Positions 23,444 through 45,790 of a stretch of 64,000 bases of DNA are shown here, in pieces. The stretch is taken from NCBI GenBank assembly GCA_964234715.1, contig OZ174275.1; one strand, given 5' to 3'. The notes beneath the pieces were generated by a model that saw nothing but the letters and a program-made list of their open reading frames with translations, had not been told where the DNA came from and made no database searches. This DNA comes from Podarcis melisellensis (taxonomy: Eukaryota). Position numbers and translations under genes: made by a program. Numbering within the stretch: position 1 is the first letter of the stretch; each line of letters opens with the position of its first letter.

Positions 23444-24436
23444 ATGCCATCAAGTGACAGAGACAGACAAAGACTGGCATGTGAGAGCAGCATTGAAGGA
23501 ATGTCTGAGGGAAATGGCTCTTCGGGAACAGACTTCATCCTTTTAGGATTTACAGATCAGCATGAGCTCCAGGTTTTGTGCTTTGTGCTCTTCTTTGCCA
23601 TTTATATTTTCACCGTGGCTGGGAATCTCGGCATGATTGTGTTAATCAGGATGGACCTTCGGCTCCACACACCCATGTACTTTTTCCTTAGCCATCTTTC
23701 GTTCCTAGATGTGTGCTATTCTACTACAATTGTCCCCAAGACCTTGATGAATTCTTTAGCAAACAGCAAATCCATTTCTTTCTCCGGATGCACCATTCAG
23801 CTCTTCTTCTTTGCAGCTTGTGCTACCACTGAGTGCTACCTGCTGGCTGCCATGGCCTATGACCGTTATGTTGCCGTTTGTAACCCTCTGTTGTATGCGG
23901 TTGTGATGTCTCATAAGCTTTGCATAGGGCTAGTGGCTGGGGCGTACGCTGCTGGCGTGATTAGCTCAGCCACACACACCATTTCCATCTTTCGCCTGCC
24001 ATTCTGCCATTCTCGTAGGATCAACCATTTTTTCTGTGACGGGCCTCCACTCCTAACTCTGGCCTGCTCAGACACACATTTCAATGAGATGCTGCTTTTT
24101 GCGGTTGTTGGCTTCAACATCATAGTCACCACTGTTATCATTCTAGCATCGTACTTCTCTGTCCTCACCACTATCCTGAGGATCCAGACAACGGAAGGGA
24201 GGCACAAAGCCTTCTCCACCTGTGCCTCCCATTTGGCCTCTGTTGCTTTGTACTATGGGAGTTCCCTCTTCATGTATTCACGGCCCAGCTCGAGCTATTC
24301 CCTAGATCAGGACAAGGTAGTTTCTGTTCTATACTCAGTTACAATCCCCATGTTGAACCCTCTCATCTACAGCATGAGGAACAAGGAGGTGAAAGATGCC
24401 CTCAGAAAAGTGAGAGGCAGATTCCTTTCTTGGTGA
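23444..24436 (+). CDS. Olfactory receptor, class II; gene 5 (alternative start 23501, MSEGNGS)
   Basis: Motifs [47 protein letters not shown]; acceptor TTTTTCTTTCAG ends at 23438. Confidence 0.97.
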
Positions 24437-24528
24437 CTAAAACTGCACCGTAAGATAGAGGGGGTCATACATTTTTCTGATGCAAGAGCCAGGCAGCATG
24501 GCTAACCAAATGTCTGGTGGTCTCAGCA

Positions 24529-24662
24529 CAGAGGTGGGGAAGCTGTGAGCCTCCAAATGTTGCTGGACTCCAGCTCCCATTGTCTTTGACCATGAACTAC
24601 GTTGGCTAGGGCTGATGGGAGTTGGAGTTCAACAACATCTATAGGGCCACAGGTGGTCCACA
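24529..24662. mobile_element. Palindromic hAT MITE (same family as 5883-6015; degenerate relatives at ~18860-18975 and 55629-55761)
   Basis: ATGTTGCTGGACTCCAGCTCCCAT ... ATGGGAGTTGGAGTTCAACAACAT inverted arms. Confidence 0.6.
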
Positions 24663-25858
24663 AGTGGGGAATGCCCACAGGATCTGCCATCATATAATAT
24701 GTTAGAAATGCTGTCCTCTTTAAGAAATACATTCCTACCCTGTTCTTGACTTGGTACAGGAAACTCTGTGTGATTTTTGTTGGCTTGTATTGTACAGAAT
24801 CATCTATTCCACTTGCATGATGTGCAATACATAGGTGTTTTATACTTTTTGATAAAGTTAGATATCACCTCTGTGCAAAGAGGAAGTAGAAGGGGGGGGG
24901 ATCCACATTTGAGTGCCATAATAACTTTGCTCTGTTTCTTTTGAGTCTGCTGCTGATGTCACAAACTGAAAGGACAAATATGAGATGTGTAAGGCCTTTG
25001 GTATGATGGGGAGAGGAGTCTGCTTCTTTTTCTGATGGTGTGTTTCACGTAAGTGAGTTTGACCTTTACTGCCTTTTCTACAATTAAGGTTCCCAGAGTA
25101 ATTGCACTGGAACAATTTATCTTGACAGATTAAAATGGATTAAATCACACCAGTGAGGCTTCACAGTGCTATGTGAAGCAGACAATTAATGAGCTGTTGC
25201 TCCTTCCCATCTTTAGGCTATTGTTTGGTTAATGATAACCTCTGCCTTTTGGGATGAGCACCAAAGTTGTAAGGAGCACAGCTTCAGTATTAAGTCTCAT
25301 ACTCAGGTTAACCTTAAGGACAAACGCCAGTATAACAAAAGAAAATTGCATATATAGAGCATGTTATATAAATGAAGGACATGTTCAATGAACTTTTTAT
25401 GTGTTGCTTTGCTGTAATCTATACAAAATTCCAGTAAGGTAAATTGGTATTGTTAACCCACATTGTGGACTGAGGGAGAGCAGCTTGCCTAAGTCTACCT
25501 AGTCAGCTGAAAATCAGACCTTCCATGGCTTTGCTTATAGCTCTTTGTAAGTCCTGACAGTCACCTAGTTGTCCTGACACTGTGTGAATGACACATGGAC
25601 ACCACCTTCCTGTCAAGCTTGGCCCATGGGGAATGGGGGAGATGAGAATGAAGCCTGCTGGGCAGCTCCAGTTCCTCACCACAGATCTAGTGAGATGATG
25701 GTAGAAATGTATTCCTGAAGGGGAGTTCCCGATTTATAACCCAGTCACTCAGCCACTATGCTATGTCAGTAAGCTAATTTATCAACATGAAGCTTTGGGT
25801 AGTACTTTTAGGTAAATAGGTCCACTAGCTGAGAATGAATTCTTTCTTCTGCCTCTCA

Positions 25859-26108
25859 GGAGAACCAGTGTGGTGTAGTGGTTAAGAGCGATAGACTCGT
25901 AATCTGGTGAACCGGGTTCGTGTCTCCGCTCCTCCACATGCAGCTGCTGGGTGACCTTGGGCTAGTCACACTTCTCTGAAGTCTCTCAGCCCCACTCACC
26001 ACACAGAGTGTTTGTTGTGGGGGAGGAAGGGAAAGGAGATTGTTAGCAGCTTTGAGACTCCTTAAAGGGAGTGAAAGGCGGGATATCAAATCCAAACTCT
26101 TCTTCTTC
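25859..26108 (+). mobile_element. tRNA-derived CORE/MIR-like SINE with L2-like 3' end and (TTC)n tail
   Basis: A box TGGTGTAGTGG, B box GGTTCG, core GCTGGGTGACCTTGGGC, tail GCGGGATATCAAATCCAAACTCTTCTTCTTC. Confidence 0.8.
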
Positions 26109-28142
26109 AGTTAGATTTCACCATAGATTTCATTCATGTGTTCTAGCCTTGTTATGTAAAGTACTTAAGCATGTTCTTCATTTAAACATATCAGTAATCT
26201 AACAGAAGTATCCATGCTTCCAATCATATTATGTATAATTTTAGAGATCATATGAATTGTTTTTATTTTTGGAGAAGACTCTGGACTGTTCCCCTCAAGA
26301 CAATGAGCATAATATGGTTCTGAGAAAAAGAATGCTTCGTTAGTTAAACTTCTTCCTGGAATAAAGGTCCCACAAAATGGTGCTGGGGAGCTGTGGCTTT
26401 AAACTGTGTCCTTTGACAGGCAGGCACTGAAGGGTTCCATCCTGTCTTTCGTCTAATGTGGGGAAGCTGCTGAGCTCAGTTATCTGTATGGAGCCTACTA
26501 ACCCTGAAAGTGATACCATCCTTGGTCCTGGCACTTATCCTGATACAATGTTGAGTGATTTATCCCTGCCTTGGAAATATGGTCTGTGTTGCATATAAAC
26601 CTGATCAATAAAGTTGTGTCTATTGATTAGGAGTTGTGCCATGGTCTATCTTCTAGCTGGTTCAGTAAATATGGAAATGACAACTTCTGCATCTCTGGGT
26701 CTTTCTTACTCCTCTGAGATCAAGTCCCTCAAATTAGTAAACAGTATATCTTTCCAATTAGAATAACAGTGTTGGTTCCCATATGAATGCATGCAAAAGG
26801 GATTTAAAGGCAAAATGAATTTAAGGCACAGTGGAAGAAAGCTATAGCTCTTTTGCCAACCTCAGCTGACTGGCCAACTGGCCTCAGTGAGATCAGCAGC
26901 ACACTCTGTAGTTGCTGTGATAATTACTTACTTGAGGATTTATTTACATTACGATAAAATCACCAAACCACAGAAACAATATGGTACTGAAGTCTGGCAG
27001 TAAGGCACTTCCACTGTCAAGTAACTTTCTTCACATTAATTAAGGTAGGTAGGTAGTACATGATCAAAACAGATCAGATGAGTTGTCTCCTTACTGTCCT
27101 TGGACAGTGCGTATGACTGGGGATAGAAATGGTGGCTGAGTGTATTTGTGGGGGCTGTGTGTGAATGTATATGTATATGAAAAGATGTGTACATGAGAGA
27201 ATGATGTTTTTGTGCGTGTTTAGGGGAAGATGAATACTACTTGTGAATGGGGTATCTGATAGGTCAGAAACATAAAAGAAGCAGACCCTGACCTCTCCCA
27301 TGGCACCTTCCCCTCAAACTTGCTGGATGAGACTCAGTGAGCTAGGCTCAGTGAGACTAGCAGAATTTCATGCCTGCTTAGGGCATCCTGGACCAGTGTG
27401 AGAATAGTAGTATAAAGCACTAAAATATATAGCTGTTTAATTCTTAAAACATTGACTTAAATCCGTACCACAATCTGATGCCTCTTTACCCTGAAGTAAC
27501 GCCTACTGAATGATTTGGGGCTTACTTCAAAGTAATAAGGCATAGGATTGCAGCTTCAAAGCATTTTAAAAGATAACAGTTGCATATTAAATGATCTAAT
27601 CTGAAAATGATTTTTAAAAAGATGCATATTCACAAAGCTGGATATTAGTGCAAATGAAGAAAAAAATAGATTTCCCCCTAAAATTTATATGGAATTTATT
27701 CCGCTAATGAAATATGGGAGTAACATTTGTTAAATTATATAACTATTCTTTGTAATATCACTAAGTATTATGATAATGTTTTTTTATATTTGCAGATTGA
27801 GGATAAAGGAGAAATTAATGCTCTGCAAGCTATGGCACACAAGTAGCCTGTACGAATTGGTAATCACAGAAATACTCATTATTAAGTACAGTGATACATT
27901 CTGACATTTTGGGTTATGACTTCTGAAGGTATTTCAGCACACTCTATCTCCAACTGCCTCTGTCCACGCACACCCTTAATATCTGGCAAGGGGGTGGAGA
28001 AGTCAAATGACCTCTTCACAGAGCAAGATGTCAAAATAGGCAGCGCACTACACTGCAGACTTCACTTCCTTCCCCATCTGAAGGTGCACAAAGATCCATG
28101 TTCATTCACCATAACTACAGCAGGAATAAATCAGCTGCAAAA

Positions 28143-29087
28143 ATGTCTACAAAAAATATCAGTGTTGTATCTGAATTTATTTTTGTGGGATTTGCAGATG
28201 TACCAGAACTGAAGATTCCCATCTTCACATTGTTGCTGCTGATCTATGTTATCACTGTGGTGGGCAACCTAGGGATGATTTTGCTGATCAGAATGGACTC
28301 TCAGCTGCACACCCCCATGTACTTTTTCCTCAGTAATCTGGCTTTCTTAGATTTTTGCTATTCTTCCAACATCACCCCCAAAGCCTTAAGAACTGTACTA
28401 TCAGAGAGGAGAACCATTTCTTTCCTGGGATGCTTCATCCAACTGTATTTCTTTGTTGCTCTGGTAGGTACAGAGATCATGCTTTTTGGGCTAATGGCTT
28501 ATGACCGCTATGTGGCCATCTGCAACCCTTTGTTGTACACATCAATCATGTCACACACCCGATGCGTCAAGATGGCTGGGGGAGCATTCACAGCCGGTTT
28601 CTTGAACTCAATCATTCATACCACTTTGGTAGGTACTTTGTCTTTTTGCCAGTCTAATGAAATCAACCATTTCTTCTGTGAGATCCCCCCACTACTCAAG
28701 CTCTCATGTTCTGATACATCCATAGCTGAAACACTAGTTTTCATGTGTGCTGGAATCAATATGTTAGGCTCTCTCTTGATAATCCTGAGTTCTTACCTGT
28801 ACATCCTTTTCACGGTGGTCCAGATGAAGTCAGCCAAGGGCCGCAAGAAAGCCTTTTCCACCTGCATCTCCCACCTGATTGCTGTGATCATATTCTATGG
28901 AACTACTATATATGTCTATTTGCAACCTAGTTCCAACTATTCAGAGGATCAGAATAAAGTGGTGTCAATGTTCTATTCCTTTGTCATCCCAATGCTCAAC
29001 CCCTTAATTTACAGTCTGAGGAACAAGGAGGTGAAGGAGGCAATGAAGAGAGTGATGGATAAGAATGCATTTTCACATTTACTATAA
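28143..29087 (+). CDS. Olfactory receptor, class II; gene 6 (array copy 1)
   Basis: 314 aa from ATG 28143 (MSTKNIS); canonical motifs; acceptor AG at 27794-27795. Confidence 0.97.
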
Positions 29088-30152
29088 AATACTATATCAA
29101 CAGACTGTCGAATTAATTAGATTGCATGTTAGATTTTATTCAAGTCCTCTAGCCTTGTTATGTAAAGTACTTAAGCATGTTCTTCATTTAAACATATCTG
29201 TAATGCAACAGAACTGTCTATGTTTCTTGCCATATTTTTAAACATTTTAGAGAATATATGGATCCTCCTTGTATTTGGAGGAGATCGTCAGGTATCCACC
29301 CTGATACAATGAGCATTGAGCTATTAGAAAACACTGCCCAAAAAGAGGCTCTCAAAATTTGCAAAAAAAAAAAAAAAAAGACGAATGCAGCAATGGCGGT
29401 AGAGCTGAATGCATGTGTTCCTAAATGAGCATAAAATGTGTGGGAAACCTGGGGTCCTCCAAATTTCTTTGGACTCTGATGATTTCCTTCATCCACACCC
29501 AGCATAGAATCCTTCTGGACCACAATGGTAAGAAGTTTTTTTTGGGGGGGGGCAACATTTTTCTGTGTGGTTATGCTGCTTCCTGAAGTACAAGGTGGTG
29601 CTGGGTGCTGTTTCCCTAAAATGTGACCTTTGACATTGAATTGTTCCATCTTCTCTCCCATGCTTTTGACATCTACCTGACGAGGTTAGCTGTAGTTTGG
29701 GGGTGGGATGTCATCACAATGCTGATGACACCCAGCTCTTACTTATTGCTTCCACAATTCAATCCTGTGGAGGCACTGCAAATTCTAAATTTATATAGTT
29801 TTGGAAGAAAATCAATTGAAATGTAATCAAGGTAGGACAGAAGCAATCTTGGTTGGTCATTTTAATGATCTTGGAGGAGGTACACAGACTTTTCTCGACT
29901 CTTAGTACAGAAGTGCCCTTATATTCAGAAAGATAGAATATACATTTCTGAAAGAATCTAAAGAACTAGGGTGATTTGTTTCATACTTCACGTGGTAGTA
30001 CAAGCATTTATCTGCAGGGGTAGAGGGAGGGTGAAAGAGTTTATGCTATCAGGAGACGCAGCTGAGCTGAGTTTATCCCTGCCCTGGAAATGTGGTCTGT
30101 GTTGCTTGCAAGCCCAATCAATAAAGTTGTATCTGTTAATGATCTACCTTTT

Positions 30153-30310
30153 AGAAATCTTTAAGATAATATTTTAGTTTTATATTATGCTGCTTTGACT
30201 GTATACTCTACATTTGACTTTCTTCAGATAGCTTTATTTATGTTTTATAGATTTAATTTGCTGTAAACCGCTTTGAGATTTTTCTTAAAAATATAGAGTG
30301 GTATAGAAAA

Positions 30311-30353
<43 letters not shown>

Positions 30354-30357
30354 ATAG
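30153..30357 (+). mobile_element. L2-type 3' tail fragment with (AAAT)n, specific to unit 2
   Basis: TGTAAACCGCTTTGAG...GTGGTATAGAAAAT(AAAT)n; absent at the paralogous positions ~35988 and ~41773. Confidence 0.6.
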
Positions 30358-30389
30358 TTAATGGCAACTTCTGAGGCTCTGGATCTTTC

Positions 30390-30712
30390 TTAATCCTTGG
30401 AGATCAGGTTCCCTGATAAACAGTGTATGCTCCAATTAGTATAAAAATGTTTGTTCCCATAGGAATGCTTGCAAAAGGAATTTAAGACACAGTGGCAGAA
30501 AGATATAGTTCTTTTGTTAACCTCAGCAGATGGGGTAGACCTGACCCTGAATGAAATCAGTCACACACACTTTGCTTACTAGGACGATAACTTTATTGAG
30601 GACTTAAAGGTACATTGTAGCTGAATCACCGAGTCACAGAAAGAAAACACTTCTGAAGGTTGGTGGTGGGGCACTTCCACTGTCAAGTGACTTTCTTCCT
30701 AGTCATACAGGT
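30390..30712 (+). promoter_or_regulatory. Putative OR promoter plus non-coding exon 1 and splice donor of gene 7 (paralogs at ~26705-27046, 36035-36359, 41822-42145)
   Basis: O/E(EBF)-like TCCTTGGAGA and TTCCCATAGGAA, homeodomain-like CAATTAG, TATAAAAA; conserved donor AG|GTAGGT at 27045, 30711, 36358 and 42144. Confidence 0.45.
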
Positions 30713-31898
30713 AGGTAGTTTCTGATCCCATCAAGTTACATGTGTTCTATCATTATTGCACTTTTACAGTGCTTCTGACTGGGGATATGAATGGTGAATG
30801 TGTGTGAATGTGTGTGTGTATACTTTCTCTGTGTGCGGTGAACACACACATATATATGAAAGAGTGTGTGCATGAGAGAATGGGTTGTGTATTTTTAGGG
30901 ATGGGTGAATACTGCTTGATGTGAATGGGGCATTTGGGTAGTTAGAATGTGAGATGTGGGGGAGGGGAGTGAACAGTGTATATATGTGAAATGGGAGGAC
31001 TTCAGTGAAGGTATCAGATGGAATCACACTCCAAAGAAATTTTAATACTGTTCCAGGCAGCCCAAATCTCCACATGGTGGTAGATTTTAGGGGTTCCAGC
31101 AATTTTTCAGGGTTCATTTTCCTTGGAATGAAGCTCAGGGAAGACTGTGGTGCATATAGGATATCTAGTTTCATTTAGACACAAACAGTATATAACCTGA
31201 GCATAAGATGGAGGGGCTCACAGCATTAACACCCCACCAGATCTTGTTTCTCTATCAGTCCCAGCTTTGGATATAGCACAGTTCCAGCATGTCTCTGTTT
31301 CTCCAGCTTCCAGCCTGCTTCCAGCTCAGTTCACACCCAGCCACCAGACTATTATTTTCCTCTAGCAGCTAGGTGAGCGCAAGTGGATGAAAGGCCCCCC
31401 CCCCTATTAGTCTGGAAGGCACCGTCACCTAGTGGTAGCCTAGCTCATTCGTTTTGGATGCCGAGGAGGACACTTAAGGGGTCAGCTAAAGCCATTCTAT
31501 TACACGGAAACTTCTCCAACTAGATCAGCTATCTCCTCTGTTAGATTCTAACCCTCACTGGGTACACAGAGCTCCCTGATGCTTAGCGGCTGTTTCCCAC
31601 TTTACTTTTCATGGCTGCCTTACTCTTTCTAATGGCAGGGCTGGCTTTAAACCAGACACAAACATATGTTCTCCCTTGAGCAGAAGATGTGCATGTAGCA
31701 GCCCCCTGGTATGCCTGTACAGTCCTTCCTAGAACAAGGTGACAACTATAGGCTAAAGCACTAAAATATATAGCTGTATGTCTTATTTAGTTATTAAGTT
31801 ATTAAGAACAAAATCCCAAACAAGTCTACCCTGAAGGATTTCCAGCTGAATGCAATGTGGCTTAGTCCCAGGTAAGTAAGCCTAGGATAACAGCTTCA

Positions 31899-31936
<38 letters not shown>

Positions 31937-32016
31937 TTTCGTAGATTTTCACGGGTACAGGAATGCAGGTTTTGGTGTCCTCGGGTGTCTTCCCGTGTAA
32001 AAGTTGGGGTGTCTAG

Positions 32017-32054
32017 GCGACGTTTCGACGAGGTCTCACTCGTCATCTTCAGGC
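32017..32054 (-). ncRNA. Minimal type I hammerhead ribozyme motif (copy A)
   Basis: Exact reverse complement of 32475-32512. Confidence 0.75.
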
Positions 32055-32474
32055 TGGTGCTTTCGGCTTCTTGTTACTGGAACAGAGCAGGATCTCAGTG
32101 TTTGAGTTCCTATAAATACTGTTGAGGGGGTGTGGTGTATAGCCTCCAATGTTCTGGGCAGAGAGGAAGTTCCCAGGCTAGTGTGCCTTTTCTTCTTTTG
32201 TTCCTTAATTACTTGAGGGATATCTTGAGTGATTTCTTGAGTGATATCCACACCTAATGACCCACCTAAGTGGTACTCAGGATATCACTCAAGAAATCAC
32301 TCAAGATATCCCTCAAGTAATTAAGGAACAAAAGAAGAAAAGGCACACTAGCCTGGGAACTTCCTCTCTGCCCAGAACATTGGAGGCTATACACCACACC
32401 CCCTCAACAGTATTTATAGGAACTCAAACACTGAGATCCTGCTCTGTTCCAGTAACAAGAAGCCGAAAGCACCA

Positions 32475-32512
32475 GCCTGAAGATGACGAGTGAGACCTCG
32501 TCGAAACGTCGC
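32475..32512 (+). ncRNA. Minimal type I hammerhead ribozyme motif (PLE pLTR, copy B)
   Basis: gc-CTGAAGA(T)-GACGAG-tgagac-CTCGTC-GAAAC-GTC^gc: CUGANGA core at 32477, 6-bp stem II, GAAA, palindromic ACGT stem III; predicted cleavage after 32510. Confidence 0.75.
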
Positions 32513-32561
32513 CTAGACACCCCAACTTTTACACGGGAAGACACCCGAGGACACCAAAACC

Positions 32562-32610
<49 letters not shown>

Positions 32611-32690
32611 TTTCGTAGATTTTCACGGGTACAGGAATGCAGGTTTTGGTGTCCTCGGGTGTCTTCCTGTGTAAAAGTTGGGGTGTCTAG

Positions 32691-32728
32691 GCGACGTTTC
32701 GACGAGGTCTCACTCGTCATCTTCAGGC
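32691..32728 (-). ncRNA. Minimal type I hammerhead ribozyme motif (copy C), overlapping the ORF stop
   Basis: Exact reverse complement of 32475-32512; encodes PEDDE* of the PLE ORF. Confidence 0.75.
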
Positions 32729-33786
32729 TGGTGCTTTCGGCTTCTTGTTACTGGAACAGAGCAGGATCTCAGTGTTTGAGTTCCTATAAATACTGTTGAG
32801 GGGGTGTGGTGTATAGCCTCCAATGTTCTGGGCAGAGAGGAAGTTCCCAGGCTAGTGTGCCTTTTCTTCTTTTGTTCCTTAATTACTTGAGGGATATCTT
32901 GAGTGATTTCTTGAGTGATATCCTGAGTACCACTTAGGTGGGTCATTAGGTGTGGATTAGTTGCTAAAGTCTTTGTGTCTTGACCTCTTGAACTTTGTGA
33001 AGAGTTTTTCTGAGAAGATGGCTGTACTGCACTTAGTTGTGCTCTGGCTTGGCTTCGTGTATAGGGGCGAGCTGTGGTTTTGTGGCCTGTGTCAGCCAGA
33101 TCTGTGTAGGGATTGCAGGGGGGTGCAGCATCCGGAGGTGCCACCATGGTTTGGCTACTGGATGGTGTCTGTAATTTATCTGTGGAGAGGGTCTGGGTTT
33201 GGGTCTGGTGTGGTTGATTGGTGATGGCGTTCTGTGTGCCTCTGGATCTGGTGTCAGTTTTTGTGGGGAGGGCTAATTTCCAGATGTCTGGCAAGCGGGA
33301 TGTGTCGTCACGCTTGTTCATGTTGTGAGGGTGTTTCTCTATCTCGATGGCTTCCATGATTATTCTCTTGTGGTGATGTTCCATGTTAAAGAGCAATTTG
33401 GAATCTGCAAAATTAATTTCGTGTCCTGTTTCTTTCATGTGTTGGAAAAGAGAGGAAGTTTTTTCTTCTTTTTTGACGGCATTCTTGTGTTCTGCGATGC
33501 GTGCATTTATTCGTCTGTTTGTTTGTCCAATGTACGTGGCTGGGCAGACTTTGCAGGGTATTTCATAGACCCCTTGGTTTTCCAACTGGATTTTATCCTT
33601 GGGGTTTCTGAGGATATTGGCTATTTTTTGGTTGGTGCAAAAGGCTGTTTTGATATTGTGTTTATGGAGGATTTTGCTAATTTTATCTGTAGTGCCCTTG
33701 ATATAAGGAAGGAGGGCCATGCCATTGTTTTCTTCTGTGTCTTGGTTTTTGGGGGGTGTTTCTTTTTGGATTAGCTTCGTAACCCT
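32710..33786 (-). CDS. 5'-truncated PLE ORF: linker, GIY-YIG endonuclease, ~185-aa low-complexity tail (RT domain missing)
   Basis: LPYIKG...KILHKHNIKT linker; GVYEIPCKVCPATYIGQT..R...RIAEH...EAIEI...NKRD; no stops. The track's N-terminal IYIYIY comes from the TA repeat. Confidence 0.9.
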   Translation of the reverse strand, partial: RVTKLIQKETPPKNQDTEENNGMALLPYIKGTTDKISKILHKHNIKTAFCTNQKIANILRNPKDKIQLENQGVYEIPCKVCPATYIGQTNRRINARIAEHKNAVKKEEKTSSLFQHMKETGHEINFADSKLLFNMEHHHKRIIMEAIEIEKHPHNMNKRDDTSRLPDIWKLALPTKTDTRSRGTQNAITNQPHQTQTQTLSTDKLQTPSSSQTMVAPPDAAPPCNPYTDLADTGHKTTARPYTRSQARAQLSAVQPSSQKNSSQSSRGQDTKTLATNPHLMTHLSGTQDITQEITQDIPQVIKEQKKKRHTSLGTSSLPRTLEAIHHTPSTVFIGTQTLRSCSVPVTRSRKHQPEDDE

Positions 33787-34271
33787 GCATATATATATAT
33801 ATATATATATGAATTGCATCTTCAATCATCTAACCTGAAAATGAAAAGAAAGCAGATGCAAATTCATACAGCAAAATATTACTGTAAATTTTAAAGATAA
33901 TGGATTTTCAAGAAAATTGAAAAGAAACTTGTTTAAGGAATGGAACGTTGCAAAATGATATTTGTTAAATTATAGAAATATTGTTTGTAATATCCCTAGA
34001 CGTTAAGATGAGCCTTATTTTATTTTATATCTGCAGATTGAGAAGAAAAAGCAAAATCATGCTCTACAACCTAAGGCACACAAACAGTCGGTACATATCA
34101 ACAACCCAAGAAATGCCCTTTACTTAGTACAGCCAGACTTTTTTGGTTATGACTACTGAAGGTATATCATTCGCTCTTCCCAGCTGAATCCATCCTCTCC
34201 CCCAACTGAAATCATATAAAGATCCATGTTCATTCGAAATAAAAAATAGCAGGAATAAATCAGCTACAAAA

Positions 34272-35216
34272 ATGTCCACAGAAAATACCAGTGTTGTGTC
34301 TGAATTTATCTTTGTGGGATTTGCAGATGTACTGGAACTGAAGATTCCCATCTTCACATTGTTGCTGCTGATCTATGTTATCACTGTGGTGGGCAACCTA
34401 GGGATGATTTTGCTGATCAGAATGGACTCTCAGCTGCACACCCCCATGTACTTCTTCCTCAGTAATCTGGCTTTCTTAGATTTTTGCTATTCCTCCAACA
34501 TCACCCCCAAAGCCTTAAGCAATTTCCTATCAGAGAGGAGAACCATTTCTTTCCTGGGTTGCATAATACAACTGTATTTCTTTGTTGCTCTGGCAAGTAC
34601 AGAGTTCATGCTATTTGGGCTAATGGCTTATGACCGCTATGTGGCCATCTGCAACCCTTTGTTGTACACTTCAATCATGTCACACACCCGATGCATCAGG
34701 ATGGCTGGGGGAGCATTCACAGCCGGCTTCTTGAACTCAATCATTCATACCACTTTGGTAGGTACTTTGTCTTTTTGCCAGTCTAACGAAATCAACCATT
34801 TCTTCTGTGAGATCCCCCCACTACTCAAGCTCTCATGTTCTGATACATCCATAGCTGAAACACTAGTTTTCATGTGTGCTGGAATCAATATGTTAGGCTC
34901 TCTCTTGATAATCCTGAGTTCTTACCTGTACATCCTTTTCACGGTGCTCCAGATGAAGTCAGCCAAGGGCCGGAAGAAAGCCTTTTCCACCTGCATCTCC
35001 CACCTGATTGCTGTGATCATATTCTATGGAACTGGCCTGTTTATATATTTGCAACCTAGTTCCAACTATTCAGAGGATCAGAATAAAGTTGTGTCAATGT
35101 TTTATGCCTTTGTCATCCCAATGCTCAACCCTTTAATTTACAGTCTGAGGAACAAGGAGGTGAAGGAGGCAATGAAGAGAGTGATGGATAAGAATGCATT
35201 TTCACATTTACTATAA
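34272..35216 (+). CDS. Olfactory receptor, class II; gene 7 (array copy 2)
   Basis: 314 aa, canonical motifs; acceptor AG at 34035-34036. Confidence 0.97.
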
Positions 35217-36781
35217 AATACTATATCAACAGACTGTTAAATCAGTTTGATAACATGTTAGATTTTATTCAAGTCCTCTAGCCTTGTTATGTAAAGTATT
35301 TAAGCATGTTCTTCAGTTAAACATATCTGTAATGCAACACAACTGTCTATGTTCTTTGCCATATTTTTAAACATTTTAGAGAACATATGGATCCTCATTG
35401 TATTTGGAGTTGATAGTCAAGTATTCACCCTGATACAATGAGCATTGAGCTATTAGAAAACACTCCCCAAAAAGAGGCCCTCAAAATTTGCAAGAAAGAA
35501 GCAATGCAAAAATGATGGTAGAGCTGAATGCATGTGTTCCCAAATTGATTAAAATGGGTGGGAAACCTGGGGTCCTCCAGATTTCTTTGGACTCTGATTT
35601 CCTTCATCCACACCCGGCGTAGAATCCTTCTGGACCATAAGGGTAAGAAGGCTTTGGGGGAGAAGAAAAAAACATTGTTCTGTGTGGTTATGCTACTTCT
35701 TGAAATACAAGATGGTGCTGGGTACTGTTTCCCTAAAATGTGACCTCTGACAGGTAGGCCCTGAATGGTTTTATCTTGTCTCCCATGCTTTAGACATATA
35801 TCTGTAGAAGTCACCTGTAGTTTGGTCCAGGCAGACCAGCTCTTACTTATTGCTTCCACTATTCAATTCTGAGTTTATACTATGTGGAGAAGTAGCTGAG
35901 CTGAGTTCATCCTTGCCTTGGAAATGTGGTCTCTGTTGCTTGCAAGCTCAATTAATAATGTTGTGTCTGTTAATGGTCTACCTTTTAGCTGGTCAATAAT
36001 ATGGAAATGAAAACTTCTGAGTCTCTGGATCTTTCTTATTCCTTGGAGATGAAATTCCCTGATAAAAATATGTATGCTCTAATTAGTATAAAAATATTTG
36101 TTCCCATAGGAATACTTGCAAAAGGAATTTAAGGCACAGTGGCAGAAAGATATAGTTCTTTTGTTAACCTCAGCAGATGGGGTAGACCTGACCCTGAATG
36201 AAATCAGCCCCACACTCTTTGCTTACTAGGATGATTACTTTATTGAGGACTTAAATGTACATTGTAGCTCAATCACTGAGTCACAGAAAGAAAACACTTC
36301 TGAAGGTTGGTGGTGGGGCACTTCCAATGTCAAGTGACTTTCTTCGTAGTCATACAGGTAGGTAGTTTCTGATCCCATCAAGTTACATGTGTTCTATCAT
36401 TATTGCCCTTTTACAGTGCTTTCGACTGGGGATATGAATGGTGGCTTTGTGTGCATGTTTCTCTCTGTGTGTGGTGCAGACACACATGTATATGAAATAG
36501 TGCGTGCATGAGAGAATGGGTTGTGTATTTTTAGGGATGGGTGAACACTGCTTGATGTGAATGGGGCATTTGGGTAGTTATAATGTGAGATGGGGGGGGA
36601 GTGAACAGTGTATATATGTGAAATGGGAAGACTTCAGTGAAGGTATCAGATGGAATCATCCTCCAAAAAAATACTGTTCCAGGCAGACCCAATCTCCACA
36701 TGGTGGGAGATTTTAGGGTTTCCAGCAATTTTTCAGGGTTCGTTTTCCTTGGAATGAAGCTCAGCGAAGACTGTGGTGCAT

Positions 36782-39014
36782 CATAGATAGATAATTTATT
36801 ACGGTCGGAGACCACACTTGGGGTACAATTCCAGAAAGAAAACAAACTGTTAAAACAATGTACCACAATAAATTTAAAATTTATAAATGTGATAAGCATA
36901 TAGACACTTAAAACTTTAAGATCAGCTACCGCATAGATATGACCCAGAGTCACCCATGGAACCGAATTTGGGGATTTTCTTCATGAACTAGTTTGAGTCA
37001 GGGGATGGTCTGAGCCTACAGATCTGTACACAGAATCTGGAGACCATCCGGGTCGTCTTATGATCTTTGCCTAACAGGAAAAGGTCGATTTTTTTATTTT
37101 TCCAGTAGCTCAGCGAGCCTCACCAGTAGGGGATCAATGGTTTTACAACGTGCCTCTTCATAAAAGGGACATCTAAAGAACAAGTGCTCTGGGCTTCCTA
37201 TATCCCCCAATGAACAGGCGCAAAGTCTCTGAGCATATGGGACTTTTTTAAAAGGCTCCTTCCAGGACCAGCGAGGGCAGAGCCAAGCTTCTGGAGAGTG
37301 TAAAGGCCCTTCTAGCATTTTTGGATACGAGAAAGAAGAGATATGCTGCCGGTACGACTATATATCTCTTGATTTCTCCAGTTTTACAGTCAGGGCACCT
37401 TGAGCAGTCCTGTTGTCTCTCAGTGTCTGTGATTCTTTGCCTGACCATAGCTTTTGCCTGGCCCAACCCCAGACTTAGAAGGGCTTAAGGGGCAAAACCC
37501 AGTTTCTGAAGGGTGTTCAGGACTGCTGTCAGCCAGCCTGACTGGAACTGGTCGCAGAGGATCAGTGGGGCTATTCTTCAGGGGAGCAGATTCAATGCCA
37601 GCCATTTGTAAATTGATGTTAGGCAGATATAAGCCTCCACTCTCATCATCCCCATTTCTAGTCTAACCCATGCATTTGAAACACATCTGGGGACTTGTAG
37701 GAGAGCTCTAAGAAGTTTAGACTGAACTCTCTCAAGGGGGGAGAAAGCAGAGGAAGGTGGGCCCAGAAAGGATCCATAAAGGAGCTGTGTCAACGTTTTG
37801 GCCTTGTATAATTTTAGTGACGCGGGGACGAAAAAGCCCCCTTGTGCTCTAAAAAATTTAAGAATACAGTTTGCGTTTTTTTCTGCTGAGCTGCTGATGA
37901 AATTTATGTGAAGTTTGTTCCTGAGTCCTGTACCACCATTCCTAGATACTTATAATTTGTGACTTGTTCTAATTTATGGCCTCGAAGTTCCCAGCTTCTA
38001 AACTTTGGTTTTCCCCCAAAAGTGAGTATCTTGGTCTTTTGATAGTTGATTTTGAGACATTCAGTTTCACAGTATGCTGTGAGCTTTCCTGGTGCTCTTT
38101 TGAGCCCAATGGGGGTTTTAGATAAAATTACCACATCATCGGCATATAACAGGACTGAAATATGCCGATTTGTGAGCTTCAGAGGGTGGAGTTCTAAGTC
38201 ATTGAGTGCAGATCCTAAATTATTTAAATAGAAATTGAATAGTAGAGGGGCCAAAAGGCACCCTTGCCAGACTCCCTTGAAGGTTTTAATGGGGTCTGTT
38301 AGATGTCCTAGGCAGCTACACCTGACTCTAAGAGCCGTGTTTGTGTGCAGTGCCTGAATTAGGAACAGAAGCCTTCTATCTATAGTGGTACACTGTAGTC
38401 TGTCCCAGTCTGGTTCTGGAGACTGTATCGAAGGTTGCTTTTAGATCAACGAAAGCAGCATATAGTGAGGCCTGCCCTCCTGATTTGATGAGATGTTGCA
38501 ACGTTAGACAGTGATCTATCATGGACCTTCCAGGTCTAAAGCCCGCTTGTTCTATTGCCAGGATATCTTCATTCTCTAGCCATTCTGTAAACTTATTAAG
38601 GAGGTGCTTTGAGTAGAGTTTACTAATCACTAGTTTACTAATTAATAAGCTGATCGGAATATAATTTGCTGGGTCCCCTCTTTTACCTTTTTTATAGAAT
38701 GGGACAATTGTGGCTGTTCCCCATTCCCTTGGGATGTGACCAGTGTCATCTATGTAAGTAAAGAGGATGTCTAAGAAAGGTGCCCACCAATCCGCCTGTG
38801 CTTTTATCATTTCTGGGATAATGCCTTTTGGGCTTGGGGCTTTGGCCGTTTTCAGTTGGTTTATATATGATTTCATTTCAGTTACTGAAACTGGTGGCCA
38901 TTTAGCCAGTTGTTCTATATTATAATTCCATAATGGAGGTTCAGCGTCCTCATACAAAGATTGGAAGAATGAGCCCTAAAGGTCAGGGGGAATTTGTGAG
39001 GTTAAGGGGGAAAT
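36782..39014 (-). mobile_element. 5'-truncated, frameshifted non-LTR retrotransposon (RTE-X-like)
   Basis: RT fragments KAPSPKG, YKKGKRGDPANYIPISL, QAGFRPGRS..DH, FVDLKATFDTV, LLYADD, YKYLG; C-terminal CxC...EH.FF.CP.Y; 3' end GACCGTAATAAA plus (CTAT)n. The LINE call is firm; the clade call is tentative. Confidence 0.85.
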
Positions 39015-39242
39015 AGCAGAAGATGTGCATGTAGCAGCCCCCTGGTATGCCTGCACAGTCCTTCCTAGAACAAGGTGACAACTATAGGCTAAAGCACTAA
39101 AATATATAGCTCTGTATGTCTTATTTAGTTATTAAGTTATTAAGAACAAACTCCCATACAAGTCTACCCTGAAGTATTTTCAGCTGAATGCAATGTGGCT
39201 TAGTCCCAGGTAAGTAAGTCTAGGATAACAGCTTCAAATAAT

Positions 39243-39304
<62 letters not shown>
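39243..39304. repeat. (TA)n/(TG)n microsatellite; empty-site equivalent of the PLE insertion
   Basis: Flanks CAGCTTCAAAT and ATATGAATTGCATCTT match 31891-31901 and 33807-33822. Confidence 0.9.
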
Positions 39305-39765
39305 GAATTGCATCTTAAATTCTCAAACCTGAAAATGAAAAGAAAGCAGATGCAAATTCATACAGCAAAATATTACTGTAAATTTTAAAGATAATGGATT
39401 TTCAAGAAAATTGAAAAGAAACTTGTTTAAGGAATGGAATGTTGCAAAATGATATTTGTTAAATTATAGAAATATTATTTGTAATATCCCAGGACGTTAA
39501 GATAAGGCTTATATTATTTTATATCTTCAGATTGAGAAGAAAAATCAAAATCATGCACTACAACGTAAGGCACACAAGCAGTTGGTACATATCGACAACC
39601 CAAGACATGCCCTTTACTTAGTACAACCAGACTTTTTTGGTTATGACTACTGAAGGTATATCATTCGCTCGTCCCAGCTGAATCCATTCTCTCCTCCAAC
39701 TGAAATTATATGAAGATCCATGTTCATTCGAAATAAAAAATAGCAGGAATAAATCAGCTACAAAA

Positions 39766-40710
39766 ATGTCTACAGAAAATACAAGTATTGTGTCTGAATT
39801 TATTTTTGTGGGACTTGTAGATGTACCAGAATTGAAGATTCCCATCTTCACATTGTTGCTGCTGATCTATGTTATCACTGTGGTGGGCAACCTAGGGATG
39901 ATTTTGCTGATCAGAATGGACTCTCAGCTTCACACCCCCATGTACTTTTTCCTCAGTAATCTGGCTTTCTTAGATTTTTGCTATTCCTCCAACATCACCC
40001 CCAAAGCCTTAAGCAATTTCCTATCAGAGAGGAGAACCATTTCTTTCCTGGGTTGCATAATACAACTGTATTTCTTTGTTGCTCTGGCAAGTACAGAGTT
40101 CATGCTTTTTGGGCTAATGGCTTATGACCGCTATGTGGCCATCTGCAACCCTTTGTTGTACACTTCAATCATGTCACACACCCGATGCGTCAAGATGGCT
40201 GGTGGAGCATTCACAGCCGGCTTCTTGAACTCAATCATTCATACCACTTTGGTAGGTACTTTGTCTTTTTGCCAGTCTAATGAAATCAACCATTTCTTCT
40301 GTGAGATCCCCCCACTACTCAAGCTCTCATGTTCTGATACATCCATAGCTGAAACACTAGTTTTCATGTGTGCTGGAATCAATATGTTAGGCTCTCTCTT
40401 GATAATCCTGAGTTCTTACCTGTACATCCTTTTCACGGTGGTCCAGATGAAGTCAGCCAAGGGCCGCAAGAAAGCCTTTTCCACGTGCATCTCCCATCTG
40501 CTTGCTGTGATCATATTCTATGGAACTACTATATATATTTACTTACAACCTAGTTCAAACTATTCAGAGGATCAGAATAAAGTGGTGTCAATGTTCTATT
40601 CCTTTGTCATCCCAATGCTCAACCCTTTAATTTACAGTCTGAGGAACAAGGAGGTGAAGGAGGCAATGAAGAGAGTGATGGATAAGAATGCATTTTCACA
40701 TTTACAATAA
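39766..40710 (+). CDS. Olfactory receptor, class II; gene 8 (array copy 3)
   Basis: 314 aa, canonical motifs; acceptor AG at 39529-39530. Confidence 0.97.
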
Positions 40711-43700
40711 AATACTATATCAACAGACTGTCGAATTAATTAGATTGCATGTTAGATTTTATTCAAGTCCTCTAGCCTTGTTATGTAAAGTACGTAAGCA
40801 TGTTCTTCATTTAAACATATCTGTAATGCAACACAACTGTCTATGTTCTTTGCCATATTTTTAAACATTTTAGAGAACATATGGATCCTCATTGTATTTG
40901 GAGTTGATAGTCAAGTATTCACCCTGATACAATGAGCATTGAGCTATTAGAAAACACTCCCCAAAAAGAGGCCCTCAAAATTTGCAAGAAAGAAGCAATG
41001 CAAAAATGATGGTAGAGCTGAATGCATGTGTTCCCAAATTGATTAAAATGGGTGGGAAACCTGGGGTCCTCCAGATTTCTTTGGACTCTGATTTCCTTCA
41101 TCCACACCCGGCGTAGAATCCTTCTGGACCATGAGGGTAAGAAGGCTTTGGGGGAGAAGAAAAAAACATTGTTCTGTGTGGTTATGCTACTTCTTGAAAT
41201 ACAAGATGGTGCTGGGTACTGTTTCCCTAAAATGTGACCTTTGACAGGTAGGCCCTGAATGGTTGTATCCTGTCTCCCATGCTTTTGACATCTACCTGAA
41301 GAAGTCACCTGTAGTTTGGGGGTAGGATGTCATCACAATGCTGATGCCACCCAGCTCTTACTTATTGCTTCCACGATTCAATCCTGGCGAGGCACTGCAA
41401 ATTCTAAACTTTTCATAGTTTTGGAAGAAAATCAATTGAAATGTAATCAAGGTAGAACAGAAGCAATCTTGGTTGGCCATTTTAATGATCTTGGAGGAAG
41501 TACACAGACTTTTCTCAGCTGGCTCTACAGAAGTGCCCTTATATTCAGAAAGATAGAATATACATTTCTGAAAGAATCTAAAGAACTAGGGTGGTTGGTT
41601 TCATACCTCACGTGGTAGTACAAGCGTTTATCTGCAGGGCTAGAGGGTTATGGAAAGAGTTTATACTATGTGGAGAAGTAGCTGAGCTGAGTTCATCCTT
41701 GCCTTGGTAATGTGGTCTGTGTTGCTTGCAAGCCCAATCAATAAAGTTGTGTCTGTTAATGGTCTACCTTTTACCTGGTCCAATAATATGGAAATAACAA
41801 CTTCTGAGTCTCTGGATCTTTCTTATTCCTTGGAGATTAAGTTCCCTGATAAAAAATGTATGCTCTAATTAGTATAAAAATGTTTGTTCCCATATGTATA
41901 CTTGCAAAAGGAATTTAAGGCACAGTGGCAGAAAGATATAGTTCTTTTGTAAACCTCAGCAGATGGGGTAGACATGACCCTGAATGAAATCAGCCCCACA
42001 CTCTTTGCTTACTAGGATGATTACTTTATTGAGGACTTAAATGTACATTGTAGCTGAATCACTGAGTCACAGAAAGAAAACACTTCTGAAGGTTGGTGGT
42101 GGGGCACTTCCACTGTCAAGTGACTTTCTTCGTAGTCATACAGGTAGGTAGTTTCTGATCCCATCAAGTTACATGTGTTCTATCATTATTGCCCTTTTAC
42201 AGTGCTTCCGACTGGGGATATGAATGGTGTCTTTGTGTGTATGTGTGTGTCTATACTTTCTCTGTGTGTAGCACACACACGCATATATATGAAAGGGTGT
42301 GTGCATGAGAGAATGGGTTGTGAATTTTTAGGGATGGGTGAGTATTGCTTGATGTGTGAATGGGGCATTTGGGTAGATAGAATGTGAGATGTGGGGGAAG
42401 GGAAAGGAGAGGGAACAGTGTATATATGTGAAATGGGAGGACTTCAGTACAGGTATCAGATGGAATCATCCTCCAAAGAAATGTTACTACTGTTCCAGGC
42501 AGCCCTAATCTCCAATGGTGGGAGATTTTAGAGGTTCCAGCACTTTTTCAGGTTTCATTTTTCTTGGAATGAAGCCCAGCGAAGACTGTGGTGCATTTAA
42601 GATATCTAGTTTCATTTAGACACATACAGTATATAACCTAAGCATAAAATGGAGGGGCTCACAACATTAACACCCCACCAGATCTTGTTTCTCTATCAGT
42701 CCCAGCTTTGGATATAGCACAGTTCCATCATGTCCCTGTTTCTCCAGCTTCCAGCCTGCTTCCAGCTCAGTTCACACCCACCCACCAGACTATTGTTTTC
42801 CTCTCTAGTAGCTAGGTGTGTGCAAGTGGATGAAAGGCCCACATATTACTCTGGAAGGCACCATCACCTAGTGGTAGCCTAGCTCATTCGTTTTGGATGC
42901 CGAGGAGGACACTTAAGGGGTCAGCTAAAGCCATTCTATTACAAGGAAACTTCTCTGACTAGTTCAGCAATCTATATTAGATTCCAACCCTCACTGGTTA
43001 CAGGAGCCCAATAATTGGAAGGGTCTTAGGGCATTATCCAGACAGGACCCCAAAATCCACGGTGCTGATAACTGCAGTCCTTCAGCAATCGACAGATACT
43101 TGTGTCATGCACAGACTCATTATCTTATCCAGACCTGCCCCCTATCTCTCTATTTAACATTAGGGACGCAGGTAAAGGCCGATCACAACAACAACATCCC
43201 CCATAATAACTGTTGTTCATCCATGAATGATGGAGGTATTGCCCATCATTTATGGGTGGACAACTACTTTCTTCAGGGCCATATAATTCAGAGAGTTAGG
43301 GAAATGAATCATCTATTAGTGTAGTAGCACAGCACTTACGTAAAAAATGTGTAACTAATTACATATAATTTACTGAGGGTTTTCTTAAAAAATACACAAA
43401 AAACGACCCTGAGAAAATATAATTGCATTCACTTCAACAAGAAACTCCATTTCTAATCAGTGAATAAACAAGGAGGTTGGGAATTTCTGCATCTGTGCCC
43501 ATGTACAGTGGAGATCTCTGACATAGGGTTGCCATTTTTCAAACAGTGAAAATCCAGACAGAAAAGCCTTACTTTATTTTTTATTTGCAGATTGAGAAGA
43601 AAAAGAAAAAATATGCTCTACAACCTAAGGCACACAAGCTGTCTGTACACATTGACAACCCAGGAAATGCATTACTTAGTACAATCAGACTTTTTTGGTT

Positions 43701-43822
43701 ATGACTACTGAAGGTATATCTTTCGCTCTTCCCAGCTGAATCCATTCTATCCCCCAACTGAAATCATATAAAGATCCGTCTTCAGTCGAAATAAAATTAT
43801 CAGGAATAAATCAGCTACAAAA

Positions 43823-44767
43823 ATGTTTACAGAAAATACCAGTGTTGTGTCTGAATTTATCTTTGTGGGATTTGCAGCTGTACCAGAACTGAAGATTCCC
43901 ATCTTCACATTGTTGCTGCTGATCTATGTTATCACTGTGGTGGGCAACCTAGGGATGATTTTGCTGATCAGAATGGACTCTCAGCTGCACACCCCCATGT
44001 ACTTTTTCCTCAGTAATCTGGCTTTCTTAGATTTTTGCTATTCTTCCAACATCACCCCCAAAGCCTTAAGAACTGTACTATCAGAGAGGAGAACCATTTC
44101 TTTCCTGGGTTGCATAATACAACTGTATATCTTTGTTGCTCTGGTAAGTACAGAATGCATTCTTTTTGGGCTGATGGCTTATGACCGCTATGTGGCCATC
44201 TGCAACCCTTTGTTGTACACATCAATCATGTCACACACCCGATGCGTCAAGATGGCTGGGGGAGCATTCACAGCCGGCTTCTTGAACTCAATCATTCATA
44301 CCACTTTGGTAGGTACTTTGTCTTTTTGCCAGTCTAATGAAATCAACCATTTCTTCTGTGAGATCCCCCCACTACTCAAGCTCTCATGTTCTAATACATC
44401 CATAGCTGAAACACTAGTTTTCATTTGTGCTGGAATCAATATATTGGGCTCTCTCTTGATAATACTGAGCTCCTACCTGTACATCCTTTCCACGGTGCTC
44501 CAGATGAAGTCAGCCAAGGGCCGGAAGAAAGCCTTTTCCACCTGCATCTCCCATCTGATTGCTGTGATCATATTCTATGGAACTGGCCTATTTACATATT
44601 TACAGCCCAGTTCCAACTATTCAGGGGATCAGAATAAAATGGCCTCTCTATTTTATGCCTTTGTCATCCCAATGCTCAACCCCTTAATCTACAGTCTGAG
44701 GAACAAGGAGGTAAAGGAGGCAATGAAGAGAGTAACAGGTAAAAGCGCATCTTCTCACTTACTATAG
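43823..44767 (+). CDS. Olfactory receptor, class II; gene 9 (array copy 4)
   Basis: 314 aa, canonical motifs; acceptor AG at 43589-43590. Confidence 0.97.
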
Positions 44768-44805
44768 CTTGCTACTTTAAAAGGTTTTCAAGTCATATGG
44801 ATGAG

Positions 44806-45790
44806 CTTTTATTTTTTTGTATATAATTTTTATTAAATTTTCTGGTTTACAATTAAAATACTCATTTTTACATCCTTAAAATATCAATGACTTTCCTTCT
44901 TCCCTTTCCATGGTTCATTACATATTATAAATCCCTGCATATTTTATAAAAACTATACCATTCAGTATTCCATTATTGCATCCATCACAACTATTTATAC
45001 TGTTGAATTTACCTTAATGCTGCCAACGTTTTCAGCTGTACACAATTATTTCCCATATATTCAATAAATGTTTTCCAATATTCTCTAAACATGTGTTCTT
45101 CTTGTTCTCTTATTCTATATGTTAAGTATCCGAGCTGCTTATATTCTGTCAGTTTAAGTTGCCATTCTTTGGTTGAGACCTCGCTCGTTTTCCATTTTGG
45201 GGCTAACAAAACACAGGCCGCAGTAATAGTATACATAAATAACCTTTTTTGACACTTGGGAATTTCAGTCTGAGTTACCCCCAACAGAAATGACTCTGTT
45301 TATTATGGATCATTTCCCAATACTCTTTTACCCTTTTACAAATCCACCTCATATGAAAGAATGTTTCCTCCACATCTTTGCATCTTCAGCACTTATCTGA
45401 TTCAGCCTTACATATTTTCACAAGCCTACTCAGAGTTAGATACTGTCTGTAAATCATTTTCAAAGAGTTCTCCTTCAAATAATAACATGCTGTAAACTTC
45501 AAATCACTTTTTCACAGTTTCCCCCAGAGGTTAAAATCTATGTTTTGTCCTACATCTATCGCCCAGTGTGCTTTAACACGCCCGTCTTTTGTTTCCCAGT
45601 CTAATAACAATTTACATATTTTGTACAAAAGTTTCTCTTTGTTTTGTAGAGATTCTTTTTCGAATTGTGAGCTCTGGTGTGAAAAACATTTTTTTATTAT
45701 CTAATTTAAACATTTCATGTAACTGATGGTATTGTAATCCCCTGTAAAGTACAGCAATTCTCTGTAAGTTACCCACTGATATGGATTACA
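44806..45790 (-). mobile_element. Degraded L1-clade LINE 3' fragment
   Basis: Poly(T) tract and TTTATT at the left end; A-rich minus strand; ORF 45009-45284 (LFMY...AA..LLA.KWK......EW..KL.EY) resembles an ORF2 C-terminus. Confidence 0.6.

Follow-up and report, generated by a model that had tools for sequence, protein, structure and literature searches.

Mosaic olfactory receptor genes in a tandem array of Podarcis lizards: evidence for interlocus gene conversion

How did four neighbouring olfactory receptor (OR) genes come to combine two types of N-terminal and two types of C-terminal sequence in all four possible ways? The question is raised by a 64,000-nucleotide stretch of DNA from the lizard Podarcis melisellensis (GenBank assembly GCA_964234715.1, contig OZ174275.1), hereafter referred to as the window, in which at least 11 intact OR open reading frames (ORFs) are clustered. 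The sixth to ninth of these (g6 to g9) are 93-96% identical to one another across 945 bp and spaced 4-6 kb apart. An initial annotation made from the letters alone had described them as a complete shuffle of N-terminal types A and B and C-terminal types X and Y, and had attributed it to unequal crossover or gene conversion acting through an invariant middle so as to generate new binding pockets. The explanation that we favor, with a probability of about 0.85, is that OR5F1-like class II OR genes in a long-standing tandem array have been evolving by interlocus (ectopic, non-reciprocal) gene conversion; it is carried by the incongruence of gene segments, the internal position of the discordant patches, their trans-species arrangement and the homogenization of copies within genomes.

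According to this explanation, conversion tracts would repeatedly overwrite most of the coding sequence (CDS), beginning ~50-75 bp before the ATG and reaching as far as about codon 190, thereby keeping this region nearly identical among the copies. Short islands lining the odorant pocket, namely codons 83-85, codons 108-113 in transmembrane helix (TM) 3, codons 255-258 in TM6 and codon 279 in TM7, would remain differentiated, and would assort independently among the copies because the tracts end between them. The ancestral gene would have been B+Y-like, with A (RTL, V108) and X (TIY, S279) arising later. Copies of the AX, BX and AY types would have been in place before Lacerta, Zootoca and Podarcis split, a state that takes at least one conversion event by that time, and Podarcis would then have gained a fourth copy, g7.

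Each of g6 to g9 consists of a single intronless ORF of 314 codons in the translation of which the signature motifs of the family can be read. Pfam and PDB were searched with residues 75-314 of g6, g7 and g9, yielding matches to the Pfam family 7tm_4 (PF13853) of 139 bits (E-value, 2.7e-40), 146 bits (2e-42) and 138 bits (9.6e-40), respectively, relative to a cut-off of 27; the g8 protein is 95-96% identical to those of g6 and g7. The nearest proteins were annotated as "OR5F1-like" in Podarcis raffonei (96% identity) and P. muralis (92%), followed by those of other squamates (78-86%) and by mammalian OR5F1 (61-65%), the names OR5F1 and OR5F1-like stemming from automatic annotation; none of the four proteins had an exact match in the protein collection searched. 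Judging from these similarities, the four genes encode vertebrate class II ORs of the OR5F1-like subfamily. An in-frame ATG at position 28098, upstream of the start of g6 (28098-28142), would extend its ORF to 329 residues, and the P. muralis gene model P0123 starts equivalently; g7, g8 and g9 are devoid of this upstream ATG.

Distribution of variable sites and segment trees

Column-by-column comparison of the 945-nucleotide (nt) CDS of g6 to g9 revealed 92 variable sites. At eight of them (nt 222, 249, 251, 253, 255, 323, 399 and 861), g6 and g9 shared one state and g7 and g8 the other; at ten (nt 39, 676, 702, 763-766, 770, 831 and 835), g6 paired with g8 and g7 with g9; the third possible pairing, g6 with g7 and g8 with g9, was encountered at two sites (nt 732 and 780). 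All of the markers named in the initial annotation were found among these columns, and its reading of g6 as AX, g7 as BY, g8 as BX and g9 as AY was correct. On the N-terminal side, the markers are RTV or SNF at codons 83-85 (nt 249-255), a silent TCT/TCC difference at nt 222 and V or A at codon 108; on the C-terminal side, they are V or L at codon 226 (nt 676), CGC or CGG at nt 702, TIY or GLF at nt 763-770 and S or A at codon 279 (nt 835).

The two pairs of types thus described do exist, but they are not halves of genes: they are short patches at codons 83-85, 108-113, 255-258 and 279 [Table 1]. Similarly, the stretch from TM4 to TM5 is nearly invariant, as had been stated, among g6, g7 and g8, but not in g9, which carries eight private changes at nt 571-668. 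With 38 private sites, concentrated at nt 571-945 and there at nt 571-668 and 773-945, g9 is the most divergent copy. Between nt ~150 and 200, only nt 165 and 183 vary among the four genes. The marker set also turned out to be composite, in that old patches shared across species (SNF/RT, TIY/GLF and S/A) had been combined with recent changes specific to the window (nt 253, 676 and 702). The N-terminal module is itself divisible, the g7 gene of P. muralis joining SNF to the g9-type VS..CI of TM3, and residues 112-113 differ among the three g6 orthologs, which read IM, FM or CI. The islands are separable on both counts.

Table 1 Features of the OR array and their positions in the window.
Feature	Position	Strand	Description
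g6	28143-29087	+	Intact 945-nt ORF; OR5F1-like class II OR, type AX (RTV, VG..IM; TIYV, FYSF)
g7	34272-35216	+	Intact 945-nt ORF; OR, type BY (SNF, AS..FM; GLFI, FYAF)
g8	39766-40710	+	Intact 945-nt ORF; OR, type BX (SNF, AS..FM; TIYI, FYSF)
g9	43823-44767	+	Intact 945-nt ORF; OR, type AY (RTV, VS..CI; GLFT, FYAF)
N module, g7	34518-34610	+	Codons 83-85 (34518-34526; top of TM2/extracellular loop 1) and codons 108-113 (34593-34610; TM3, 3x36-3x41)
N module, g6	28389-28481	+	Same codons
N module, g8	40012-40104	+	Same codons
N module, g9	44069-44161	+	Same codons
C module, g7	35034-35106	+	Codons 255-258 (35034-35045; TM6, 6x51-6x54) and nt 831/835 (35102-35106; TM7, S/A279)
C module, g6	28905-28977	+	Same codons
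C module, g8	40528-40600	+	Same codons
C module, g9	44585-44657	+	Same codons
Homogenized middle, g7	34671-34841	+	Codons 134-190
Homogenized middle, g6	28542-28712	+	Equivalent of the g7 segment
Homogenized middle, g8	40165-40335	+	Equivalent of the g7 segment
Homogenized middle, g9	44222-44392	+	Equivalent of the g7 segment
g7-specific patch in the 3′ untranslated region (3′UTR)	35238-35254	+	Seven changes compared to g6 and g8 within 16 bp
g7 3′ flank	35327-35856	+	Homologous to the g8 3′ flank (~40821-41350); sequence past the Y patch is g8-like again

Separate trees for the two ends of the gene, as proposed in the initial annotation, were not congruent. In the tree of nt 200-400 (N block), the A types formed a derived clade (support, 92/90), and copies also clustered by species, with g7 and g8 of the window (99/99) and c1 and c3 of Zootoca vivipara (97/91) grouping together. 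The tree of nt 740-945 (C block) displayed instead a clade of X types (99/99). In approximately unbiased (AU) tests, the X clade was rejected for the N block (p=6e-5), and both the A clade (p=3e-4) and a clade of g7 and g8 (p=4e-4) were rejected for the C block. The contention that no single tree accounts for the four genes is borne out by this conflict. Permutation tests of the pairwise homoplasy index (PHI) on the 12 Podarcis copies or on 18 lacertid copies yielded p<=0.0002, whether or not adjacent sites of the same pattern were collapsed to single events; on g6 to g9 alone, they yielded p=0.0004 before collapsing and p=0.07-0.14 after. A GENECONV-style argument based on the 263-bp identity of g6 and g8 at nt 457-719 was considered and rejected, most of the polymorphic sites inside this stretch being private to g9.

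The array in related lizards and the origin of g7

The window was compared to syntenic loci of P. muralis (L001 and L002; assembly GCA_964188315.1), P. raffonei (L003 and L004; GCA_027172205.1), Lacerta agilis (L005 and L007) and Z. vivipara (L006), with loci of Rhineura (L008) and Hemicordylus (L009) serving as outgroups. In P. raffonei, a gap of ~4 kb separates L004 from L003 and leaves room for another copy. All 18 lacertid copies, 12 of them from Podarcis, were found to be intact ORFs. At the syntenic loci of P. muralis and P. raffonei, the four combinations of the window recur in the same order (AX, BY, BX, AY) and with collinear flanks, as a result of which a chimeric assembly is very unlikely and the mosaic must be older than the split of these species. 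Each gene of the window was closest to its own positional orthologs, from which it differs at 10-38 positions compared to 34-74 for paralogs; the orthologs of g6 (P. muralis L002:10046-10990 and P. raffonei L004:10001-10945), for instance, differ from it at 15-18 nt. The intergenic DNA is collinear with that of P. muralis at 94-95% identity and nearer still to that of P. raffonei. Comparison with sister species, another of the checks proposed at the outset, thus speaks for a mosaic that is both real and old. An intact 314-codon ortholog of g7 of type BY was present at L004:14229-15173 of P. raffonei that was not among the called genes, apparently having been missed by the annotation.

Lacerta and Zootoca harbor three copies each, of which c1 is of type AX, c2 is BX-like and c3 is AY. 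g8 is the positional ortholog of c2 and g9 that of c3, the interval from g8 to g9 being collinear with that from c2 to c3 of Zootoca (window positions 39500-45118 and L006 positions 5748-11292; 90.9% identity). Among the lacertid loci compared, g7 was found in Podarcis only. The outgroups carry xNF, A108, GLF or GIF, and FYAF, indicating that B and Y are for the most part the ancestral states and that A (RTL, T84, V108) and X (TIY, S279) are derived; the BY combination of g7 comes near to the ancestral one, as represented by the outgroups. Since c1 has the derived A in common with c3 and the derived X in common with c2, at least one exchange took place before the lacertid genera diverged.

The middle of the gene, which had been regarded as an invariant and passive substrate for crossover, proved to be more alike within genomes than between orthologs. 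Across codons 134-190, the synonymous difference amounts to 0-0.05 between paralogs of one genome and to 0.05-0.13 between orthologs of different genera. Paralogs being closer than orthologs at synonymous sites, the middle is itself being homogenized and is a product of conversion rather than its inert template. In c3/g9 compared to c1/c2 of the same genome, the synonymous difference is 0-0.11 over codons 1-190 and 0.38-0.53 over codons 251-314. Taken together, these values amount to partial concerted evolution, in which most of the gene is being homogenized, the terminal 64 codons of g9, which belong to an old lineage, having long escaped. The window species has 16 derived states of its own, six of which are moreover common to two or three paralogs (nt 292, 294 and 297 in g7, g8 and g9; nt 438; nt 676 in g6 and g8; nt 702 in g7 and g9), and Lacerta and Zootoca each display seven species-specific derived sites common to paralogs; parallel mutation would be expected to yield ~0.1 such shared states on a rough estimate. 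Sharing of lineage-specific states between paralogs on this scale indicates that conversion is continuing. The earlier markers V85, V226 and CGG234 (nt 253, 676 and 702) belong to this recent layer.

As to the origin of g7, the sequence context favors a tandem duplication of the c2/g8 unit in the stem lineage of Podarcis, because the upstream context of c2 has been retained by g7, where it matches that of Lacerta c2, and the downstream context by g8; in the three-copy arrays, copies recur at a regular interval of 4 kb. Its BY combination may either reflect the import of two short patches from g9 or be what is left of an older BY sequence after the rest of it was overwritten; we consider these two possibilities about equally probable, and both involve conversion. 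As regards the possibility of relics, g7 harbors neither the derived states of X nor those of c3 across nt 763-835. The patch in its 3′UTR [Table 1] is conserved in the g7 genes of the three Podarcis species and, in P. muralis alone, was also copied into g8 (P. muralis sites, L001:4434-4457 and L001:10963-10986); two of the states of this patch recur in the outgroups.

Conversion weighed against other explanations

The flanks of the genes are decisive as to the kind of exchange involved. Upstream, g7 and g8 are 94% identical over 350 bp. Downstream, from +111 to +640 past the stop codon, the g7 flank of the window is 97.2% identical to that of g8, with stretches of 99-100%, compared to 95.4% and 93.4% for its own orthologs in P. 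muralis and P. raffonei, respectively, and to 86.3% for g6 of the window. g7 departs from g8 only from nt ~676/763 to ~100 nt past the stop codon, so that its discordant tract is internal and has sequence of the recipient (g8-like) lineage on both sides. Likewise, the 5′ flank of g6 is orthologous to that of c1 of Lacerta and Zootoca (86-89% identity), in contrast to ~70% for its own paralogs, which it begins to resemble just 53-75 bp before the ATG. At the other end of the array, the 3′ flank of g9 shows no homology to those of the other copies, similarity stopping at the stop codon. Discordant pieces that are internal patches in otherwise continuous units are the signature of non-reciprocal conversion.

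Of the two mechanisms initially put forward, non-reciprocal exchange between paralogs is therefore the one that stands, the g8-like flanks on both sides of g7 speaking against unequal crossover through the middle. In the latter case, the mosaic genes would be hybrids born of reciprocal recombination and joined in the conserved middle. The tandem arrangement of units of ~4-6 kb, and a copy number of three in Lacerta and Zootoca and four in Podarcis, imply that unequal exchange or some other duplication mechanism did act at this locus, and a deletion-type crossover between g7 and g8 would also yield a c2-like gene in the contexts observed. In a crossover hybrid, however, the flank on either side would be expected to come from the parent of that side, and the 3′ flank of g9, the Y parent of g7, is unrelated to that of g7. 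The gene order expected from such an event, in which the hybrid made of 5′ Q and 3′ P lies between P and Q, matches neither g6-g7-g8 nor g7-g8-g9, and the modules are patches of ~5-15 bp rather than halves. We thus regard crossover hybrids as improbable, albeit less so than the two further explanations considered. One of these is an artefact of assembly or polishing, whereby near-identical tandem copies or alleles were mis-joined and the four combinations correspond to no real chromosome. The similarity and close spacing of the copies would lend themselves to such an error, but the assemblies of two other species would have had to reproduce it in the same order between collinear flanks, and to do so without disrupting any of the 12 Podarcis ORFs; this makes it very improbable. 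The other, to which we give equally little credence, is that the pocket residues arose independently, selection having driven convergent or parallel substitutions, with no exchange of DNA. The type-defining sites are indeed mostly non-synonymous and at pocket positions. Yet linked synonymous sites (nt 39, 222, 399, 702 and 831) co-vary with the types, the same patchwork extends to non-coding flanks, and the patch at nt 763-774 is the same at 12 of 12 nt in g7 and Lacerta c3, which would take five to six identical changes. Finally, convergence predicts different codons for the same residues within a type, the opposite of what was seen.

A number of observations weigh against conversion as the preferred explanation or temper the evidence for it. 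The groups submitted to the AU tests came from the hypothesis of the initial annotation and from our own inspection, and were not named blind. The four genes of the window, taken alone, lose significance for spatial clustering once sites are collapsed, and this test is suggestive but not decisive. The states shared by paralogs of the window species could in principle reflect mis-polishing between paralogs. A single continuous tract from g9 to g7 over nt 763-835 is excluded, as g7 is devoid of the c3-specific states at nt 783-828, and more than one short tract, or else overwriting combined with a relic, is consequently needed to account for the history of g7. For the g7 3′UTR patch, no donor turned up either in the window or in the nine loci compared. 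Lastly, the ratio of non-synonymous to synonymous substitution (dN/dS) of ~1 in the patches, compared to ~0.12 elsewhere, was rejected as a sign of positive selection, since the codons had been picked after seeing the data. Conversion is supported in spite of these points by the evidence detailed above; the direction and number of the events are what we infer from it.

The surroundings of the four genes present further features. The unit upstream of g6, containing g5 (23444-27936), represents an ancient copy of the repeat unit to which g6 to g9 also belong; its CDS is ~65% identical to theirs and segments of its flanks, downstream and upstream, are 69-79% identical, such that the flanks are no more diverged than the CDS. 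Between g6 and g7 lies a 1.7-kb insertion (32100-33789), initially labeled as Penelope-like, that has no counterpart in the orthologous P. muralis spacer (L002 13934-14030) nor, to go by the spacing, in that of P. raffonei, and that is thus specific to the lineage of the window. It contains a direct repeat of 99.7% identity (31904-32249 and 32578-32923), and its 371-residue ORF (32710-33825, minus strand) had no match in Pfam. At the edge of the OR cluster, a 411-residue ORF (62367-63602) with a reverse transcriptase domain (RVT_1, 4.2e-29) probably represents the remnant of a long interspersed nuclear element. In a GC-richer region (52-56 kb; 46.5% GC), ORFs of 201 and 223 residues overlap on opposite strands (54863-55595); their translations are of low complexity and rich in Ser, Gly and Pro, and they probably are not genes.

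The odorant pocket and known systems

The residues that define the types were placed on the structure of class II ORs by means of the DRY (R122) and FYG (Y252) motifs, which share the numbering of Olfr412 and by which residues 108, 112, 255, 256 and 259 correspond to positions 3x36, 3x40, 6x51, 6x52 and 6x55. In Olfr412, V108 (3x36), L255 (6x51), C256 (6x52) and Y259 (6x55) contact the odorant, N112 (3x40) packs on Y252, and the position of the odorant is said to be set by the size of the residue at 3x36 (PMC13025043). The difference between A and B includes V/A108 and I/F/C112, and that between X and Y includes T/G255 and I/L256. The view that the types differ in the pocket was thereby upheld for 3x36 and 3x40 of TM3 and for 6x51-6x52 of TM6. 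Over residues 75-311, g7 can be aligned to a consensus OR5 (9wpm_A, E=1.4e-98) with no gaps. The equivalence in TM7, where S/A279 would lie beside the conserved Tyr, is drawn from the motif only.

All copies display dN/dS values of 0.09-0.47, indicative of purifying selection and arguing for constraint only. The islands may alter ligand tuning, and selection on ligand specificity may protect them from conversion. The proposal that the exchanges generate new binding pockets did not hold in this form, the four combinations being old and kept as positional orthologs in three Podarcis species, with BY near the ancestral state. Tentatively, and with more doubt than confidence on our part, the four receptors might constitute a two-by-two "factorial" set maintained by selection while conversion erases nearly all other differences, its modules being 3x36/3x40 of TM3 on the one hand and 6x51-6x54 of TM6 with residue 279 of TM7 on the other, both kept for the whole age of Podarcis. 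If so, conversion and selection would together both generate odorant specificities combinatorially and preserve them, and the array would provide a natural system of minimal differences in which to ask whether two pocket modules contribute to the range of ligands in an additive or an epistatic manner. In either event, four receptors with few residue differences and all combinations of modules represent a ready set for deorphanization and for patch swaps that address the joint role of TM3 and TM6/TM7 in odorant tuning. The array also serves as a warning to annotators, in that OR gene trees built from the whole CDS can mislead as to orthology and the dates of duplications.

We found no report of such an array in Podarcis in the literature. 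In OR clusters of mammals, gene conversion and recombination "generate mosaic receptor sequences", and conversion homogenizes OR coding regions (PMC1995454, citing Sharon et al. 1999). As in the lizard array, tandem intronless class II paralogs in these clusters swap short non-reciprocal tracts (Sharon et al. 1999, primate chromosome 17; Kambere & Lane 2007, PMC1995454), and mosaic receptors are likewise found together with homogenized coding regions. The lizard array differs in coming from a squamate, in holding all four combinations of two pocket modules in one array, in retaining these combinations as positional orthologs in three species, and in having outgroups that polarize the states. 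In contrast to the solved class II ORs (consensus OR5, 9wpm_A, and Olfr412), the lizard receptors are known from their sequence.

In the tandem array of the primate L and M opsin genes, conversion homogenizes most of the sequence and a few sites involved in ligand or spectral tuning stay distinct, seemingly because converted alleles are selected against. That array comprises two genes and a few tuning sites, whereas in the lizard array there are four genes, with two or more modules that assort independently, and selection on its islands is an assumption derived from the pattern. With regard to the distinction between concerted and birth-and-death evolution of multigene families, as framed by Nei and Rooney, the array resembles families under concerted evolution in that paralogs of one genome are closer than orthologs of different genera, here over codons 1-190. 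The resemblance is only partial, as the region from TM6 to the C-terminus of g9/c3 has long escaped (proportion of synonymous differences, 0.4-0.5) and orthology among Podarcis species is kept overall. The array would thus be a new and well-replicated example of a known process rather than of a new mechanism, one in which partial concerted evolution of chemoreceptor genes is unusually clean, is replicated across species, and leaves a few residues at odorant-contact positions distinct and independently assorting.

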